This document shows positions 7,585 through 14,642 of a stretch of DNA of 64,000 bases, piece after piece. Position numbers and translations under genes: made by a program. Source of the stretch: Obrimoposthia wandeli (Eukaryota); assembly GCA_977020255.1 (NCBI GenBank), contig CDROCS010004085.1, forward strand, positions 1 through 64,000. The letters are read 5' to 3'. The notes below the pieces were generated by a model that saw only the letters and a list, made by a program, of their open reading frames with translations, made no database searches and was not told where the DNA came from. Numbering within the stretch: position 1 is the stretch's first letter; the number at the start of each line of letters is the position of its first letter.

Positions 7585-8316
7585 ATGACTTACAAAATTT
7601 TGATTGTAGAAGACGACCCTATTATTAGGATGAAGATTAAGGGGCACTTCGCCCAGGCTGGTCACACTGTTTTCGAGGCTGATAACGGTGTTGGGATGAA
7701 AGAGATCCTTAACCGCGAGAAAATTGATTTGATCCTGCTGGATATTAACTTACCAGGAGAAGACGGCATACAGCTCACCCGTGACGTGAGGAACAGATCT
7801 GACATTGCTATCATCATGGTCACAGGCCGAACTGACCCCATCGACCGAATTTTAGGCCTTGAAATGGGCGCAGATGACTATGTAACCAAGCCTGTAGAAC
7901 CACGAGAGCTGCTGGTACGTGCAAAAAACTTGCTATGGCGTATCCAGCTTACCCGTGACGCTTTGGAACAGGCAGAGGCTGCTTGGTCGCAACTGGAAAA
8001 GGATGATAGTACATTCCGGTTCCTGAACTTTGAATTTGATGTTGCTCAGCGTCAGCTGTCAAAGGGTCACGATATGGTAAAGCTAACCAAAGCTGAATAT
8101 GAGTTGCTGGTCGCTTTCATCACGCACCCCAACCGGGTTTTAGGTCGAGACCGGCTTCTAAACCTGATCTCTCATCGAGTTGATACACCGAGCGATCGTA
8201 CCGTTGACGTTTTGATACGCCGGCTGAGAAACAAGATGGAAGAGTGCATCAAAAACCCCAAGATTTTTATCACCATACACGGTGAAGGTTACCTCTTTGC
8301 GCCAGAGGTCGCTTAG
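7585..8316 (+). CDS. torR: TorR-like OmpR-family response regulator
   Basis: Receiver motifs ([29 protein letters not shown]) and TorR/ArcA-type [14 protein letters not shown], followed by a winged helix ([19 protein letters not shown]). It may be a paralog rather than the true torR. Confidence 0.85.
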
Positions 8317-9692
8317 CCCCGTGAATATAACAATAAGAGCCAAGCTTTCATTCATTATGTGCGCCTCATTGCTGACAATGAGTGGTTTTTTTATCACAAG
8401 CCTTATGAATACGGAACAATCTGTTCTTGCGACGGAACAAAGTAATGTGAGTGTTAAGGTTGCTAAGTTATTGAATGATAATTTAAAGGGCCAGGTTGAT
8501 ACCGTTACCCGCTCCCTTTCCTATTATTATGAGAATTCGAAGCTAGAAAATATCAAGGCAGAATTAGCGACTGATATCACTACGTTTAGAAATGCCATAG
8601 ACAATATTTATAACAACAGTGACTCTGCGGCCGATGCCGAAACCAGCATTCATGCTTTTATCAATGAATACCGCTGGGACAATGGCCGGTATATCTTTGC
8701 CTATGATGCCGCCTCAATAGTGAACAAGGCTAACGGAGCCAACGTCAGTATTATCGGCACCAGTGCTTATGACAAAAAAGACACCAATGGCAACTATTAC
8801 GCACGAAATATTGTCAGTGCAACCAAAGCCAATGCTATTGGGTTTACCAGTTATCACTTCTTAAACCCGGAAACCCAAAAAGTCGAAGAAAAACTGACGG
8901 CATCGTTTTATTTTGAACCGTTAAACATGGTTGTTGCGACGGGCGAATACATCAGTACATTAAGGCGAGATGAACTAGAGGCGGCTCTTAATACTATCAG
9001 TTCATCAAAATACGGCCAAAATGGCTACTTTTGGGTACAGGACAAGAGCGGCAAGATCCTGGCTCATCCCAAGGCCGACATTATCGGTACTGTCATTCCG
9101 TCAACAACATTCAGAATTGCCGACAGAATAAAAGGCCAATCCGAAGCCTTTGTTAAAATTGCTTACGAAAATCCGACCACCAAACAAACAGAGAACAAAA
9201 TTGCCTATGCCAGAAATATTTTTCCTGAATGGGGCTGGACGATTGCTACTGGCACTTATGAGAGCGACATCACTAGCATTCAAGATGGGCTGACTCGCGC
9301 TACGGCAGAAATTTTTAATGACAAAGTGTACATGAACATTGCTACTGCCGCTGTACTGCTGATTATTGCTCTGCTGGTCGCAACCTGGTCGATCAATAAG
9401 ATTGTTAGAGGCTTAGTGATCCTCAAAGAGCGCATTGATACTTTATCGACCGGCGAAGCCGACTTAACCTCACGGATTGATATCACGTCACATGATGAGT
9501 TGGGCGATATTGGCAAGTCGGTAAACAACTTCATTATTTATCTGCAATCCATGACTCTGGAAATTTCGCAAGCCTCTGCTCATATCACTGACGGTATCAA
9601 GCACGCCTCCGAGACGACCGCAAACACTCAAAAAGCCAGTGACCAAGCACTGTTGTTAAAATATGATGTGGCTGAGGCTCCTGGCAGTATGA
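8313..9692 (+). repeat. Diverged direct duplicate of 12559-14055 (MCP 5' half)
   Basis: Shared sequence starts at TTAGCCCC(G/A)TGAAT and ends at CTGGCAGTATGA. Many identical codon runs occur in between, and this copy has two in-frame deletions (45 and 72 nt). Confidence 0.95.
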
Positions 9693-11428
9693 CAGCGGTA
9701 ATAAGAAAACTGGCGGCGGGTGATCTCTCCGTCGATATTCCGCGGGGGGAAAGTGACGAGATAGGCCACCTTGCGGATGCAATATCGGTATTTAAGAAAA
9801 ATGCTTTAGCCTTGCGAGAGCACCAGAATGAACTACAAAAACTGGTAGATGAACGTACGACGCAGCTTACAGAGGCCAATAACGCACTAAACAGTGAAGT
9901 CGCCAAGCATGCAAAAGCACGAGAACAAGCGGAACAGGCCAACAAAGCCAAATCGTCTTTCCTTACCCACATGAGCCACGAGATCCGCACCCCCATGAAC
10001 GGGATAATGGGGACGCTACACCTCCTTGATGATACAACCTTAGACAACGCACAAAAACACTACACTAAAACCATTATTTCATCAGGCGAAATTCTGATGG
10101 GGGTACTCAATAATGTCCTGGATTATTCTAAAATCGAAGCCGGGTGTTTCGATATTAATGAAACAAATTTCCGCACCGATTTGATTGTGGGCAATGTTGT
10201 CAACATGCTTAAAGCCAGAGCCAAAGAAAAGAACATCAAACTAACCTATGCAGTCGCAAGCGATGTTCCAATTTGTTTGTATGGTGACGCCAACAAAATC
10301 ATCCAGATCCTCATTAACTTAGTCGGTAATGCCATTAAATTTACCAATATGGGAAGCGTCACAATCCGGGTGTTGGTCAAGGAGCAACTGGCGGAAGAAC
10401 GATTTTTGCTCACGTTTGAGGTGCTAGACACTGGTAAAGGTATTAATGAAGAAAAACAGTCGGCTATCTTTGAGCCTTTTGAGCAGGCGACTCAATCAGA
10501 ACGTGGTACCGGATTAGGTTTGCCTATCAGTAAGCGGTTCGCCGAGATGCTTGGCGGGGAGTTAACTGTGTACAGTGAGCCGGATATCGGTAGCCGGTTT
10601 ATTCTCATACTGCCGTTGAGTGCAGCCGAGGAGTGCGATCCAATTTCCACAGACGAGCCTGTTTCCCTTACTGTCCCGCCATTGAATATTTTGCTGGTAG
10701 AAGATAATGAAACGAATGTGCTGGTCGCTAAAGGATTCCTAGACAAGCTTGGTCACAAGGTTGTTGTAGCCATGACAGGAGAAATGGCACAACGTGCGAT
10801 AGAGGATCATCATGTCGACATCATCTTAATGGATATTAATCTACCGGATACTGACGGTGTGACGCTGACGGGTAGATTGAGAGAGAAAGCAAATCGCTAT
10901 ATACCCACTATTGCCTTCTCTGCCCATGTTTTCCGACAAGACATTGAATCATACCTTGAGGCCGGCCTCGATGGTTTCTTAGGTAAACCGGTACAGTTTA
11001 AGCAGATGCAGACTGTTATCGCTAATGTCTATAACGGCCAATCCAGCAAGTTCGATGCAGTTAGGGATATAGATCGGGACGTGGGCAAGGAACCTGCCGT
11101 CACTCTTTTTGACTACTCGGTGCTGGAGAACGATCGGCAGATCCTCGGAGATGGACTAGTGCAGGATATGGTAGAAATGTTTTACGTACGTTCGGCGACT
11201 CTGACCCATGAAATAAAAATCCAGAGCTCAGCAAAATCTCTTGAGTTGCTAGTTCACAGCCTTAAAAGCTCTGCCGGAGCCATTGGCCTAATTGCCCTGA
11301 GTAAAGCCTGTGAGGAACTGGAAATAGCTTGTAAGCAAGGGGCAGATGAGCTGGCGTTAACGAAATTGTCAGCGGCCTTACTTGCTATCTATGCCCCTTC
11401 TATCGACAGACTGAAAGAAGAATTTTAA
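8321..11428 (+). CDS. Chimeric hybrid sensor kinase: MCP-derived Cache sensor and HAMP + TorS-like HAMP-HisKA-HATPase-REC-HPt
   Basis: GTG 8321 aligns with the ATG of the MCP at 12567, and the N-terminal ~460 aa align with that MCP. These are followed by [10 protein letters not shown] (H-box), [22 protein letters not shown], a receiver ([16 protein letters not shown]) and an HPt ([13 protein letters not shown]). Confidence 0.92.
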
Positions 11429-11799: not shown

Positions 11800-12381
11800 A
11801 TGTCACTACCAAATGTAATTCTAACTGTGCTGAGCAATCGCGACGCAACCGGTTACGATATCACCAAAGAATTCTCGCGCAGCATCGGTTATTTCTGGAA
11901 AGCGAGCCACCAACAGGTGTATCGCGAATTGAATAAAATGGCCGACAACAACTTGGCGACCTCCCGACTTGAACCGCAAAATGGCAAACCGGATCGTAAG
12001 GTCTACTCCATTACCGAGCTCGGACGACAGGCTCTGTTTGAATGGTTCCAGGAACCTGCTCGCAATCCAAAGATCCGCGATGAGTTTTTGGCCAAACTAC
12101 TGGTTTGTGGTGTTCATAATTCAGAACCATTGCAAGAACAGCTTGAGGCACTCATTCAAGAGTCTCATTCGCTAATGAACAACTATGATGAACTGGAAAA
12201 AATCCACTTCGCGAATTACAAAGAGATGGATCGCCAGTTTCGTCTTGACCGCCTGACCCTGCGCCGCGGCATGCATAACCGCCAGGCGTGGATTAACTGG
12301 GCAGAAGAAGTCCTCATTGAGCTTAAAGCAATCGAGAGTTCGAAAAGCAGCTGCGCGGGAGAAGTCCGTCTTTGTGGATAG
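11800..12381 (+). CDS. aphA: AphA-like PadR family regulator
   Basis: MSLPNVILTVLSNRDATGYDITKEFSRSIGYFWKASHQQVYRELNKM is nearly the canonical Vibrio AphA N-terminus, and KPDRKVYSIT, RDEFLAKL and RLTLRR follow. It has an extra ~15-aa C-terminal tail and may be a paralog. Confidence 0.88.
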   Translation: MSLPNVILTVLSNRDATGYDITKEFSRSIGYFWKASHQQVYRELNKMADNNLATSRLEPQNGKPDRKVYSITELGRQALFEWFQEPARNPKIRDEFLAKLLVCGVHNSEPLQEQLEALIQESHSLMNNYDELEKIHFANYKEMDRQFRLDRLTLRRGMHNRQAWINWAEEVLIELKAIESSKSSCAGEVRLCG

Positions 12382-12566: not shown

Positions 12567-14642
12567 ATGAATTTAACAATAAAAGCCAAGCTGGCCGCAT
12601 TGCTATGCGTACCATTGCTTACCATGAGTGGTTTTTTTATTACAAGTCTTATAAATACGGAAAATTCTGTTCTTGAGGCGGAAAGTAGCAATGTCAGTGT
12701 GAAGGTCGCTAAGTTATTGAATGATAACTTAAAGGGGCAGGTTGATACTGTTACCCGCTCCATTTCTTATTATTATGAGAATTCGAAGCAAGAAAATATC
12801 AAGGCAGAGTTGGCGACTGATATCGCGACGTTTAGAGACACAATTGAAAGTATTTATAACAACAGTGCTTCCGCTGTCGATGCAGAAACCAGTATTAACG
12901 CTTTTATTAACCAATATCGGTGGGGCGGTGGCCGTTATATCTTTGCGTATGATGCCGCAACAGTTATTAACAAGGCTAACGGTGCCAACGAAAGTATTAT
13001 CGGCACCAGTGCTTATGATAAAAAAGACACCAATGGCAAATATTATGCGCGAAATATTGTCAGTGCAGCTAAAGCCAATGGAATTGGGTTTACCAGTTAT
13101 TATTTCTTAAACCCGGTCAGCAATAAAGTCGAAGAAAAATTGACAGCATCGGTTTACTTCGAACCGTTGAACCTGGTTATTGCGACGGGTGAGTACATTA
13201 GTACCCTAAGGCAAGATGAACTTGAGGCGGCCATTAAGACCATCAGTTCATCTAAATACGGCCAAAATGGCTACTTTTGGGTACAAGATAAGAACGGCAA
13301 GATCCTGGCTCACCCAAAGGAAGAAGTTATCGGTACTGTCATTCCGGCAACAACATTAAAAATTGCCAACAGCATCAAAAGCCAATCCGAAGCTTTTGTT
13401 AAAATCGCTTTCGAAAACCCGGCCACCAAACAGACAGAAAACAAATTTGTCTATGCTCGAAATATTTTCCCGGAGTGGGGCTGGACCATTGCGACTGGCA
13501 CTTATGAAAGCGACGTCACGAATATTCAAGATGAGCTGACTAACGCTACGGCAGAAATTTTTGAAGACAAAGTGAATATGAGCATTGCAATTGCCGCTGC
13601 ACTGCTGGTGATTTCTCTGCTGGTCGCGGCTTGGTCGATCAATAAGATTGTTAAAGGCTTAGTAATGCTCAAAGAGCGCATTGACACCTTATCGACCGGC
13701 GAAGCCGATTTAACCTCGCGGATTGATATTACGTCACATGATGAGTTGGGTGATATTGGCAATTCGGTAAACAACTTCATTATTTATCTGCAATCCATGA
13801 TCCTGGAAATTTCACAAGCCTCTGCTCATATTACTGATGGTATCAAGCAGCTTGATGTGCAGTCAGAGCAAAATAATCAGGCGTTAATCCAGCACGCATC
13901 AGAGACGGATCAAGTCGTCGCGGCTATTACTGAAATGAGCGCAACGGCTGAAACCGTCGCACAGAATGCTACCGAGACAGCCGCTAACACCCAAAAAGCC
14001 AATGATGATGCGCTGTTGGCAAAAGACGATGTGCTTGAGGCGTCTGGCAGTATGATTGTTCTGGTGGATGAAGTGGGTACGGCATCAGCGAGCATTAATA
14101 CCATGAACGAGAATACTCAGCAGATTGTCAGTGTGCTAGGTGTGATTGGTGAAATTGCCGATCAGACTAACTTGCTGGCGCTCAATGCCGCTATCGAAGC
14201 AGCACGCGCCGGAGAGCAAGGACGAGGCTTCGCCGTGGTTGCCGATGAAGTACGATCGCTTGCTGCGCGTACCCAGTCTAGCACCGCAGAAATCAATGAG
14301 ATCTTAACGACATTACGTCAGGATGCCTCTAGTGCGGTTGCCGCAATGGAAGTGACGAAAACAAGCTGCGAACGTACAGCTGAAAATGCTGAGCGGGTAT
14401 CAAACAGTCTGGATGCGGTGACCGGATCCATTGTCGAAATCAATGATCTCAGCACCCAAATTGCAACCGCTTCTGAGGAGCAAAGTTCGGTAACCGAAGA
14501 AGTAAGCCGTAATATGAATAACATCCGCGAGATGGTTCAGGAATTGACCCAAAACGGACAAGCTACGGTAGACAGTACTCAAAGCTTGGCAGCTGCCAAC
14601 ACCCAACTGAACACTCTGGTCAGTAAGTTTAAATTGCAATAG
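12567..14642 (+). CDS. Methyl-accepting chemotaxis protein with tandem Cache domains
   Basis: TM1, periplasmic Cache motifs ([29 protein letters not shown]), TM2, HAMP and the MA hairpin [34 protein letters not shown]. Confidence 0.96.

Follow-up and report, generated by a model that had tools for sequence, protein, structure and literature searches.

Results

Locus of the fused kinase

The stretch analysed here (the window) comprises 64,000 nucleotides (nt), positions 1 to 64,000 of the forward strand of contig CDROCS010004085.1 in the Obrimoposthia wandeli assembly GCA_977020255.1. Our subject is the hybrid sensor kinase encoded at 8321–11428, which joins the sensor part of a chemoreceptor (methyl-accepting chemotaxis protein, MCP) to a TorS-like phosphorelay core, and in which a piece of a chemoreceptor methylation helix lies between two HAMP domains. 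The comparisons below suggest that this piece is a vestige that has been eroding by in-frame deletions. The features of the locus are as follows (positions in the window; aa, amino acids; TM2, second transmembrane segment; AS1, first amphiphilic sequence of a HAMP domain).

7585–8316, + strand: OmpR/TorR-type response regulator (RR; Pfam Response_reg and Trans_reg_C), likely partner of the kinase
8321–11428, + strand: hybrid sensor kinase (dCache_2, TM2, HAMP1, remnant of the MCP helix, HAMP2, HisKA, HATPase, REC, Hpt; domains by Pfam)
8429–9271, + strand: dCache_2 periplasmic sensor of the kinase, aa 50–330, shared with the MCP (PF08269, E = 2e-44)
9392–9544, + strand: HAMP1, aa 371–421, MCP-derived (PF00672)
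9545–9601, + strand: conserved helical extension after HAMP1, up to GIK; near-identical in kinases and MCPs, and the start of methylation helix 1 in the MCP
9600–9603, + strand: junction of deletion 1, where one AGCA remains and the MCP has a further 45 nt (15 codons)
9611–9615, + strand: junction of deletion 2, where one GAGAC remains and the MCP has a further 72 nt (24 codons)
9602–9691, + strand: remnant of methylation helix 1 of the MCP, 30 codons from HASET to GSM, with homology to MCP 13893–13907 and 13980–14054
9691–9692, + strand: original fusion point, Met|Thr, inside AS1 of HAMP2, from comparison with non-fused TorS proteins (P0121–P0123); homology to the MCP stops at 14054
9686–9784, + strand: HAMP2, Pfam aa ~469–501, profile positions 12–44 of 53 (PF00672); TorS-derived from 9692
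9947–11362, + strand: HisKA, HATPase_c, REC and Hpt phosphorelay core, TorS-like (Pfam)
11800–12381, + strand: PadR-family regulator, between kinase and MCP (Pfam)
12567–14642, + strand: paralogous MCP of 691 aa (dCache_2, HAMP, MCPsignal; Pfam), a stand-in for the donor lineage
13848–13892, + strand: MCP segment 1, 15 codons, absent from every kinase that can be aligned; its boundary slides over 13846–13894 via the AGCA repeat
13908–13979, + strand: MCP segment 2, 24 codons, missing from the kinase in the window and its closest relatives; the boundary slides over 13902–13978 via the GAGAC repeat

Over the 427 aa from the sensor through HAMP1 the kinase and the neighbouring MCP are 83% identical (81% in a six-frame genome search), and in BLASTP comparisons the homology extends through dCache, TM2 and HAMP1 into the first methylation helix of the MCP. 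Both HAMP copies score above the gathering threshold of PF00672 when searched as fragments, HAMP1 with 35.5 bits and HAMP2 with 28 bits against a cut-off of 25 (E = 2.8e-6). The MCPsignal domain (PF00015) was detected by Pfam in the neighbouring MCP and is absent from the kinase, which is not itself an MCP by this measure.

Two in-frame deletions at the junction

Compared with the MCP, the kinase lacks two pieces of methylation helix 1. In the MCP the sequence AGCA occurs at 13846–13849 and 13891–13894, 45 nt apart, and GAGAC at 13902–13906 and 13974–13978, 72 nt apart; the kinase has a single copy of each, at 9600–9603 and 9611–9615, respectively. The lost peptides are 15 residues (QLDV to ALIQ) and 24 residues (DQVV to ATET) long, both losses being in frame and neither a multiple of the heptad. 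An earlier, sequence-only reading of this stretch had described these two gaps and a piece of about 30 aa of methylation helix 1 left between two HAMP domains; all of its coordinates were recovered in the sequence, and Pfam places the HAMP domains on either side of that piece.

BLASTP of the kinase against the MCP yields two gaps, of 15 and 24 residues; MAFFT yields one gap of 117 nt or 39 aa, at both the DNA and the protein level, because of an internal near-repeat in the MCP, HASET/NATET. The five kinase codons between the gaps match the HASET site of the MCP at 13 of 15 nt, compared to 10 of 15 for the alternative placement, and at the six nucleotide sites that discriminate HASET from NATET in the MCP the kinase in the window agrees with HASET at four, with NATET at one and with neither at one. 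As kinases of four lineages carry the first gap only (see below), the sequence comparison establishes two separate in-frame deletions and not one. The same junction is present in six genomes, which rules out an assembly artefact.

The repeats at the junctions exceed chance expectation. When all 2284 distinct in-frame deletions of 30–90 nt that are possible in this stretch of the MCP were enumerated, junction microhomology of at least 4 nt occurred in 0.66% of them (P = 0.0066) and of at least 5 nt in 0.13% (P = 0.0013). In MCPs with a Lys before HASET, deletion 1 is flanked by a longer repeat, ATY-AAG-CA, with 8 of 9 nt matching. The repeat is present at both ends of each undeleted segment and one copy is retained at each junction, the pattern of deletion by microhomology or slippage. 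The two deletions share with spontaneous deletions between short direct repeats both the retained copy and the repeat length, 4–5 nt here and 8/9 nt in some MCPs; what is of interest is not the mechanism, which is not unusual, but the location.

The spacing from HAMP1 to the signalling tip was measured in MCP homologues of Photobacterium, Psychromonas, Shewanella, Vibrio and Moritella. MCP orthologues already lacking the segments, which the sequence-only reading had named as evidence against deletion in the kinase, were not found among them: the spacing is invariant in 100 of the 102 measurable homologues, the remaining two being off by one residue (possibly a fuzzy anchor match), and it recurs in all 22 MCPs of the fetched loci. 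Two distant outgroup MCPs from elsewhere in the same assembly (L003, L004) retain both segments. The invariance of the MCP spacing places the deletions in the kinase.

Fusion point and TorS parentage

A search with the C-terminal 581 residues of the kinase found, as the nearest unfused relatives, proteins annotated as TorS with 51–53% identity. In an alignment of the TM2-HAMP region with P0121–P0123, TorS-type sequence begins at Thr471 (9692), ten residues before the glycine of the GDL motif and inside AS1. The MCP-derived residues just upstream, with the consensus D-[VIL]-L-[ED]-x-x-G-x-M, are retained family-wide. The last ~9 residues of the remnant take the place of the N-terminal portion of AS1 in TorS, its hydrophobic positions −17, −16 and −10 among them, and the restriction of the Pfam HAMP2 match to part of the profile fits such a hybrid AS1. 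The description of the remnant as a linker consequently needs to be divided: most of it is a spacer between the two HAMP domains, but its family-wide conserved end substitutes for the start of AS1 of HAMP2, and it is probably only this end that matters.

The kinase has the HisKA, HATPase, REC and Hpt architecture of the TorS family and its closest homology is to TorS. In place of the TorS periplasmic sensor PF21689, which is listed for the TorS relatives only, it has dCache_2. By descent it is not a TorS but a TorS paralog whose sensor has been replaced.

A proline has been gained independently at two positions of this region, at −13 from the GDL glycine in the group of the window (codon 9680–9682) and at −14 in the group of P. 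chitinilyticum, P. alginatilyticum and P. marinum. Position −14 is that of the AS1 proline in the Pfam HAMP consensus.

Relatives and order of events

The contig of the window comes from a Photobacterium whose proteins are 94–97% identical to those of its near relatives P. indicum and P. frigidiphilum, and the source assembly (1.35 Gb, 6912 contigs) includes many bacterial contigs.

The fused kinase was found only in Photobacterium. Its closest relative is in P. indicum (94%), and the other carriers are P. frigidiphilum, P. sagamiensis, P. lipolyticum, P. obscurum, P. chitinilyticum, P. marinum, P. alginatilyticum, P. proteolyticum, P. kasasachensis and several metagenome-assembled genomes (MAGs). 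A codon alignment shows the loss of segment 1, with an identical boundary, in all kinases that still have an alignable linker. Nine genes, from six genomes, are without segment 2 as well: those of the window, P. indicum and one MAG, and two tandem copies each in P. frigidiphilum, P. sagamiensis and P. lipolyticum. Segment 2 is kept in P. obscurum (L013/P0010), in P0008, and in the third paralogs of P. lipolyticum (L012/P0007) and P. sagamiensis (L021/P0016). Because these relatives have the first gap without the second, the alignment indicates that deletion 1 is old, having occurred at or after the fusion, and that deletion 2 is younger and certainly postdates the fusion. The intermediate linker lengths that the sequence-only reading had advised looking for in orthologs thus exist, in the form of four lineages with deletion 1 only. 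Its proposal that trimming followed the fusion is supported for deletion 2, as segment 2 is retained in four fused lineages.

The nine short forms share derived codons in the linker that have no counterpart in the long forms (GCC in HASET, and GAC-CAA/CGA later), the exception being the HN18 MAG with GCT in HASET. These shared codons point to a single origin of deletion 2 in the aligned genes.

In a tree of the sensors, the kinase sensors and the adjacent MCPs form one clade (support 95 by the Shimodaira–Hasegawa-like approximate likelihood ratio test, SH-aLRT), within which the adjacent MCPs separate as a subclade (93). It follows that the fusion is old and that the neighbouring MCP stands for the lineage of the donor and is not itself the donor. 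In the same tree, related MCPs on contigs C506 and C5819 of the same assembly group with a Shewanella MCP. The sensor of the P. lipolyticum long-linker kinase (L012, 7970–11222) groups with a different MCP paralog (L023, L024; SH-aLRT 99) and apart from the remaining kinases, which may reflect a second sensor replacement or gene conversion.

The unit of RR, kinase and PadR genes, with the RR directly upstream of the kinase and PadR after it, is kept in 13 of 14 related loci checked (the exception is L012), and an MCP gene lies downstream of the unit in the group of the window, in P. obscurum and in P. chitinilyticum. Tandem pairs of fused kinases, in the order RR-kinase-kinase-PadR-MCP, occur in P. 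frigidiphilum and P. sagamiensis, and in P. lipolyticum the kinase-PadR unit is doubled, giving RR-kinase-PadR-kinase-PadR-MCP (the loci of the three species are covered by L009 4716–11108, L010 4705–11123 and L011 3694–11117). The duplicate copies differ mainly in the dCache sensor (83–86% versus 91–97% identity to that of the window), their kinase parts being equally close. The synonymous divergence (dS) between kinase and adjacent MCP is 0.2–1.0 in the group of the window and saturated in P. obscurum and P. chitinilyticum (window 8321–9600 versus 12567–13845; same pairs in L013 and L014), a possible sign of gene conversion between neighbouring sensors, or of unequal rates.

A scan of metagenomes added four loci, none of them with a full-length undeleted helix. 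A metagenome contig (L051, about 950–1025) carries two frameshifts separated by 67 nt, one of −1 and one of +1 (the latter in an A-run), in the stretch that includes the linker and the beginning of HAMP2, with two stop codons between them; these are either an assembly error or the mark of a broken copy.

Variability and constraint of the linker

The length of the connector between the HAMP domains was measured in intact kinases from the Lys of GIK to the Gly of GSM. There are 13 length classes: 53, 51, 37, 35, 34, 29, 28, 27, 25, 20 and 11 aa, together with a 36-aa variant produced by slippage in a C-run (a change of ±1 codon) and a 54-aa variant, P0008. The lengths modulo 7 take the values 0, 1, 2, 4 and 6, with no common heptad phase. 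Kinase genes that are ~90% identical overall differ by ±1 codon in the connector, and the number of prolines per connector ranges from 0 to 6.

The ratio of nonsynonymous to synonymous substitution rates (dN/dS), calculated by the Nei–Gojobori method and, for the kinases, pooled over the nine short-linker genes, is as follows.

30-codon linker remnant, kinases: dN/dS 0.60
HAMP1, kinases: dN/dS 0.04
HAMP2, kinases: dN/dS 0.04
dCache, kinases: dN/dS 0.21
The same 30 codons in seven MCPs: dN/dS 0.15
Deleted segment 1 in MCPs: dN/dS 0.06
Deleted segment 2 in MCPs: dN/dS 0.03

In four phylogenetically independent gene pairs the nonsynonymous and synonymous differences amount to 23.5/12.5 in the linker compared with 9/78 in the flanks. 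The difference is significant with p = 7e-10 by Fisher's exact test, and in the same four pairs substitution in the linker is not distinguishable from neutral (p = 0.16). HAMP2 and the S-helix have a mean column identity of 88% across the family.

A register-tuned coiled coil is expected to have a conserved length, or lengths that change in heptad or 7/11-residue steps, and to be free of helix breakers, and the connectors show neither property. The variable length and the near-neutral substitution therefore argue for relaxed constraint on a vestige and against a register-critical coiled coil. The same observations (13 length classes, no common phase, ±1-codon differences, up to six prolines, dN/dS of ~0.6) do not support the claim of the sequence-only reading that linker length and helical register were tuned after the fusion.

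Other features of the locus

The kinase is 1035 or 1048 aa long depending on the start codon. The mechanical open reading frame (ORF) opens at GTG 8282 and overlaps the RR gene; GTG 8321 is the likelier start, since it lies 4 nt past the TAG stop codon of the RR gene (8314–8316), is preceded by AGAGG and aligns with Met1 of the MCP. Neighbouring genes identified by Pfam encode the RR, PadR, EamA, DUF4442, OCD-like, aminotransferase and YheO-like regulator proteins. A scan with the methylation pattern [ASTG]2-x2-[EQ]2-x2-[ASTG]2 gave no match in the kinase or the MCP, and no C-terminal pentapeptide for binding of CheR/CheB was found in the MCP at 12567–14642, which terminates in KFKLQ.

Discussion

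Probable origin and erosion of the linker

We favour the explanation that the linker is the vestige of a helix that slippage deletions have been eroding while constraint is relaxed, and would assign it a probability of about 0.72. In an ancestor of a group of Photobacterium species, a dCache chemoreceptor gene would have been joined in frame, by its 5′ part, to the gene of a TorS-like hybrid kinase. The chemoreceptor part would have extended past HAMP1 to codon 69 of methylation helix 1, and the join would have landed in the middle of AS1 of the kinase's own HAMP domain. The trapped helix, which normally packs in an antiparallel four-helix bundle, would have been deprived of its partner helix once the rest of the MCP hairpin was lost, and may thus have become a spacer under little constraint, flanked by two HAMP domains under strong constraint. 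This spacer would then have been eroded by in-frame deletions between short direct repeats, through replication slippage or microhomology-mediated deletion. The first step was the loss of 15 codons, common to all known members with an alignable linker, and the second the loss of 24 codons in the lineage of the window (P. indicum, P. frigidiphilum, P. sagamiensis, P. lipolyticum and a MAG), while other lineages would have shed other pieces independently. Such deletions would necessarily be in frame in the genes that survive. We infer that the spacer acts as a tolerant tether rather than as a register-critical coiled coil, and that the family is still functional, judging from its intact genes, conserved locus and conserved HAMP2/S-helix region.

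Several observations weigh against this explanation. The constraint on the linker is reduced but not gone: its dN/dS is below 1, and the short forms have kept some motifs, KAND and LL. Every change makes the connector shorter, and deletion 1 has become fixed throughout the family, a pattern that selection for a shorter connector would produce as well. HAMP1 is under very strong purifying selection in the kinases and is as strongly conserved as in MCPs, so that its output must matter and presumably reaches HAMP2; how a HAMP1 signal would pass through a proline-containing spacer is a puzzle, as the connector of many species cannot be one rigid helix. The structure prediction that the sequence-only reading had called for, run as an AlphaFold2 model of the full-length monomer from an alignment of 87 sequences, adds little: it draws the linker as coil, but the predicted local distance difference test score (pLDDT) is below 50 over HAMP1, linker and early HAMP2 alike, as expected for dimeric HAMP domains, so that the model cannot show the linker to be unstructured and offers weak support at most. 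Finally, a tree of the C-terminal kinase part rejects the monophyly of the short-linker forms (p = 0.003 by the approximately unbiased test, AU), with long-linker paralogs nested among the short ones.

The rejection of monophyly means that a single origin of deletion 2 requires exchange between paralogs. We read the conflict between the C-terminal and sensor trees as such exchange, in which case the C-terminal tree gives no clean count of events. The alternative, that deletion 2 is a recurrent hotspot event in which the same 72 nt were lost repeatedly between the GAGAC repeats of different paralogs, would account for the nested long forms directly, and slippage between fixed repeats can happen again; but derived codons in the linker are common to the nine short forms and absent from both nested long forms, and together with the conflict between the trees this makes recurrence quite improbable. 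Less credible by far is the notion that a single 117-nt deletion took place and the two-gap picture is an artefact of alignment, or that the segments are insertions in the MCP. The single MAFFT gap and the ambiguity introduced by the HASET/NATET near-repeat would suit the former, yet the kinases with the first gap only and the better match of the intervening codons to HASET contradict it, as the invariant MCP spacing across genera contradicts the latter. Both are refuted by the intermediates and the outgroups.

The alternative closest to the sequence-only reading is that selection after the fusion trimmed connector length and register to let HAMP1 drive HAMP2 and the kinase correctly, as in engineering of the Tar-EnvZ type. 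Both deletions are in frame and fixed, the first universally, later changes all shorten the connector, and with both flanking HAMP domains strongly conserved their coupling presumably matters; the independent prolines at −13 or −14, near the canonical position of the AS1 proline, could represent adaptive capping. Set against this, no register is conserved, genes ~90% identical differ by ±1 codon, losses of 15 and 24 residues are not heptad multiples, and the linker has internal prolines and evolves near-neutrally. The comparative record of the family thus displays no preferred connector length or phase, and tuning appears unlikely as a general account, though for single steps it could have operated.

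The family might constitute a natural titration series, in which two strongly conserved HAMP domains are joined by lengths that range from ~50 residues of decayed helix to ~10 residues, often with several prolines. Should all members still respond to the dCache ligand, HAMP-to-HAMP signalling would need neither helical continuity nor a fixed register. We offer this as a speculation that is less likely than not. Were it true, such signalling might act via dimer geometry or bundle stability, and the lineages may be converging on a directly abutted di-HAMP.

Relation to known systems and significance

Engineered chimeras of chemoreceptors and kinases are sensitive to the phase of the junction. 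In function the kinase resembles the Taz (Tar-EnvZ) chimeras, in that an MCP sensor, transmembrane region and HAMP domain drive a histidine-kinase core, with the junction in or near a HAMP helix. In contrast to Taz, the fusion here is natural and at least as old as the genus, both parental HAMP domains and a stretch of the MCP methylation helix are kept, and the connector length varies freely among species. With the TorS/TorR system it shares the HAMP, S-helix, HisKA, HATPase, REC and Hpt part (at 51–53% identity) and an adjacent OmpR-family regulator, but the periplasmic sensor (PF21689 in the relatives) has been exchanged for dCache_2, TM2, HAMP1 and the remnant. No TorT or trimethylamine N-oxide (TMAO) reductase genes were present among the ORFs scanned beside the kinase, the rest of the genome not having been searched.

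In poly-HAMP arrays the di-HAMP modules are joined tightly, the helices are continuous and the linkers between HAMP domains are all of one length (PMC13446029). The kinase is not such an array, as its linker varies among close relatives, contains prolines and can be traced to a vestige of an MCP helix. In the terms of the same work (PMC13446029) it belongs with the multi-HAMP proteins, having two dissimilar HAMP domains with a linker, here a variable one, between them.

Literature searches found no description of this chemoreceptor-TorS kinase fusion. The shuffling of sensors between chemoreceptors and kinases is known, but a visible scar is rare. Here the donor lineage adjoins the fused gene, the position of the junction is known to the codon, and the fate of the leftover helix can be followed through several stages in living relatives. 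The case also cautions against reading tuning into every in-frame microhomology deletion at the joint of a fusion, as such deletions can be neutral erosion. The family provides a dated natural counterpart to laboratory chimeras of the Tar-EnvZ type, and its native linkers of 11–53 aa form a ready set for testing how much helical continuity is needed in HAMP-to-HAMP signalling.

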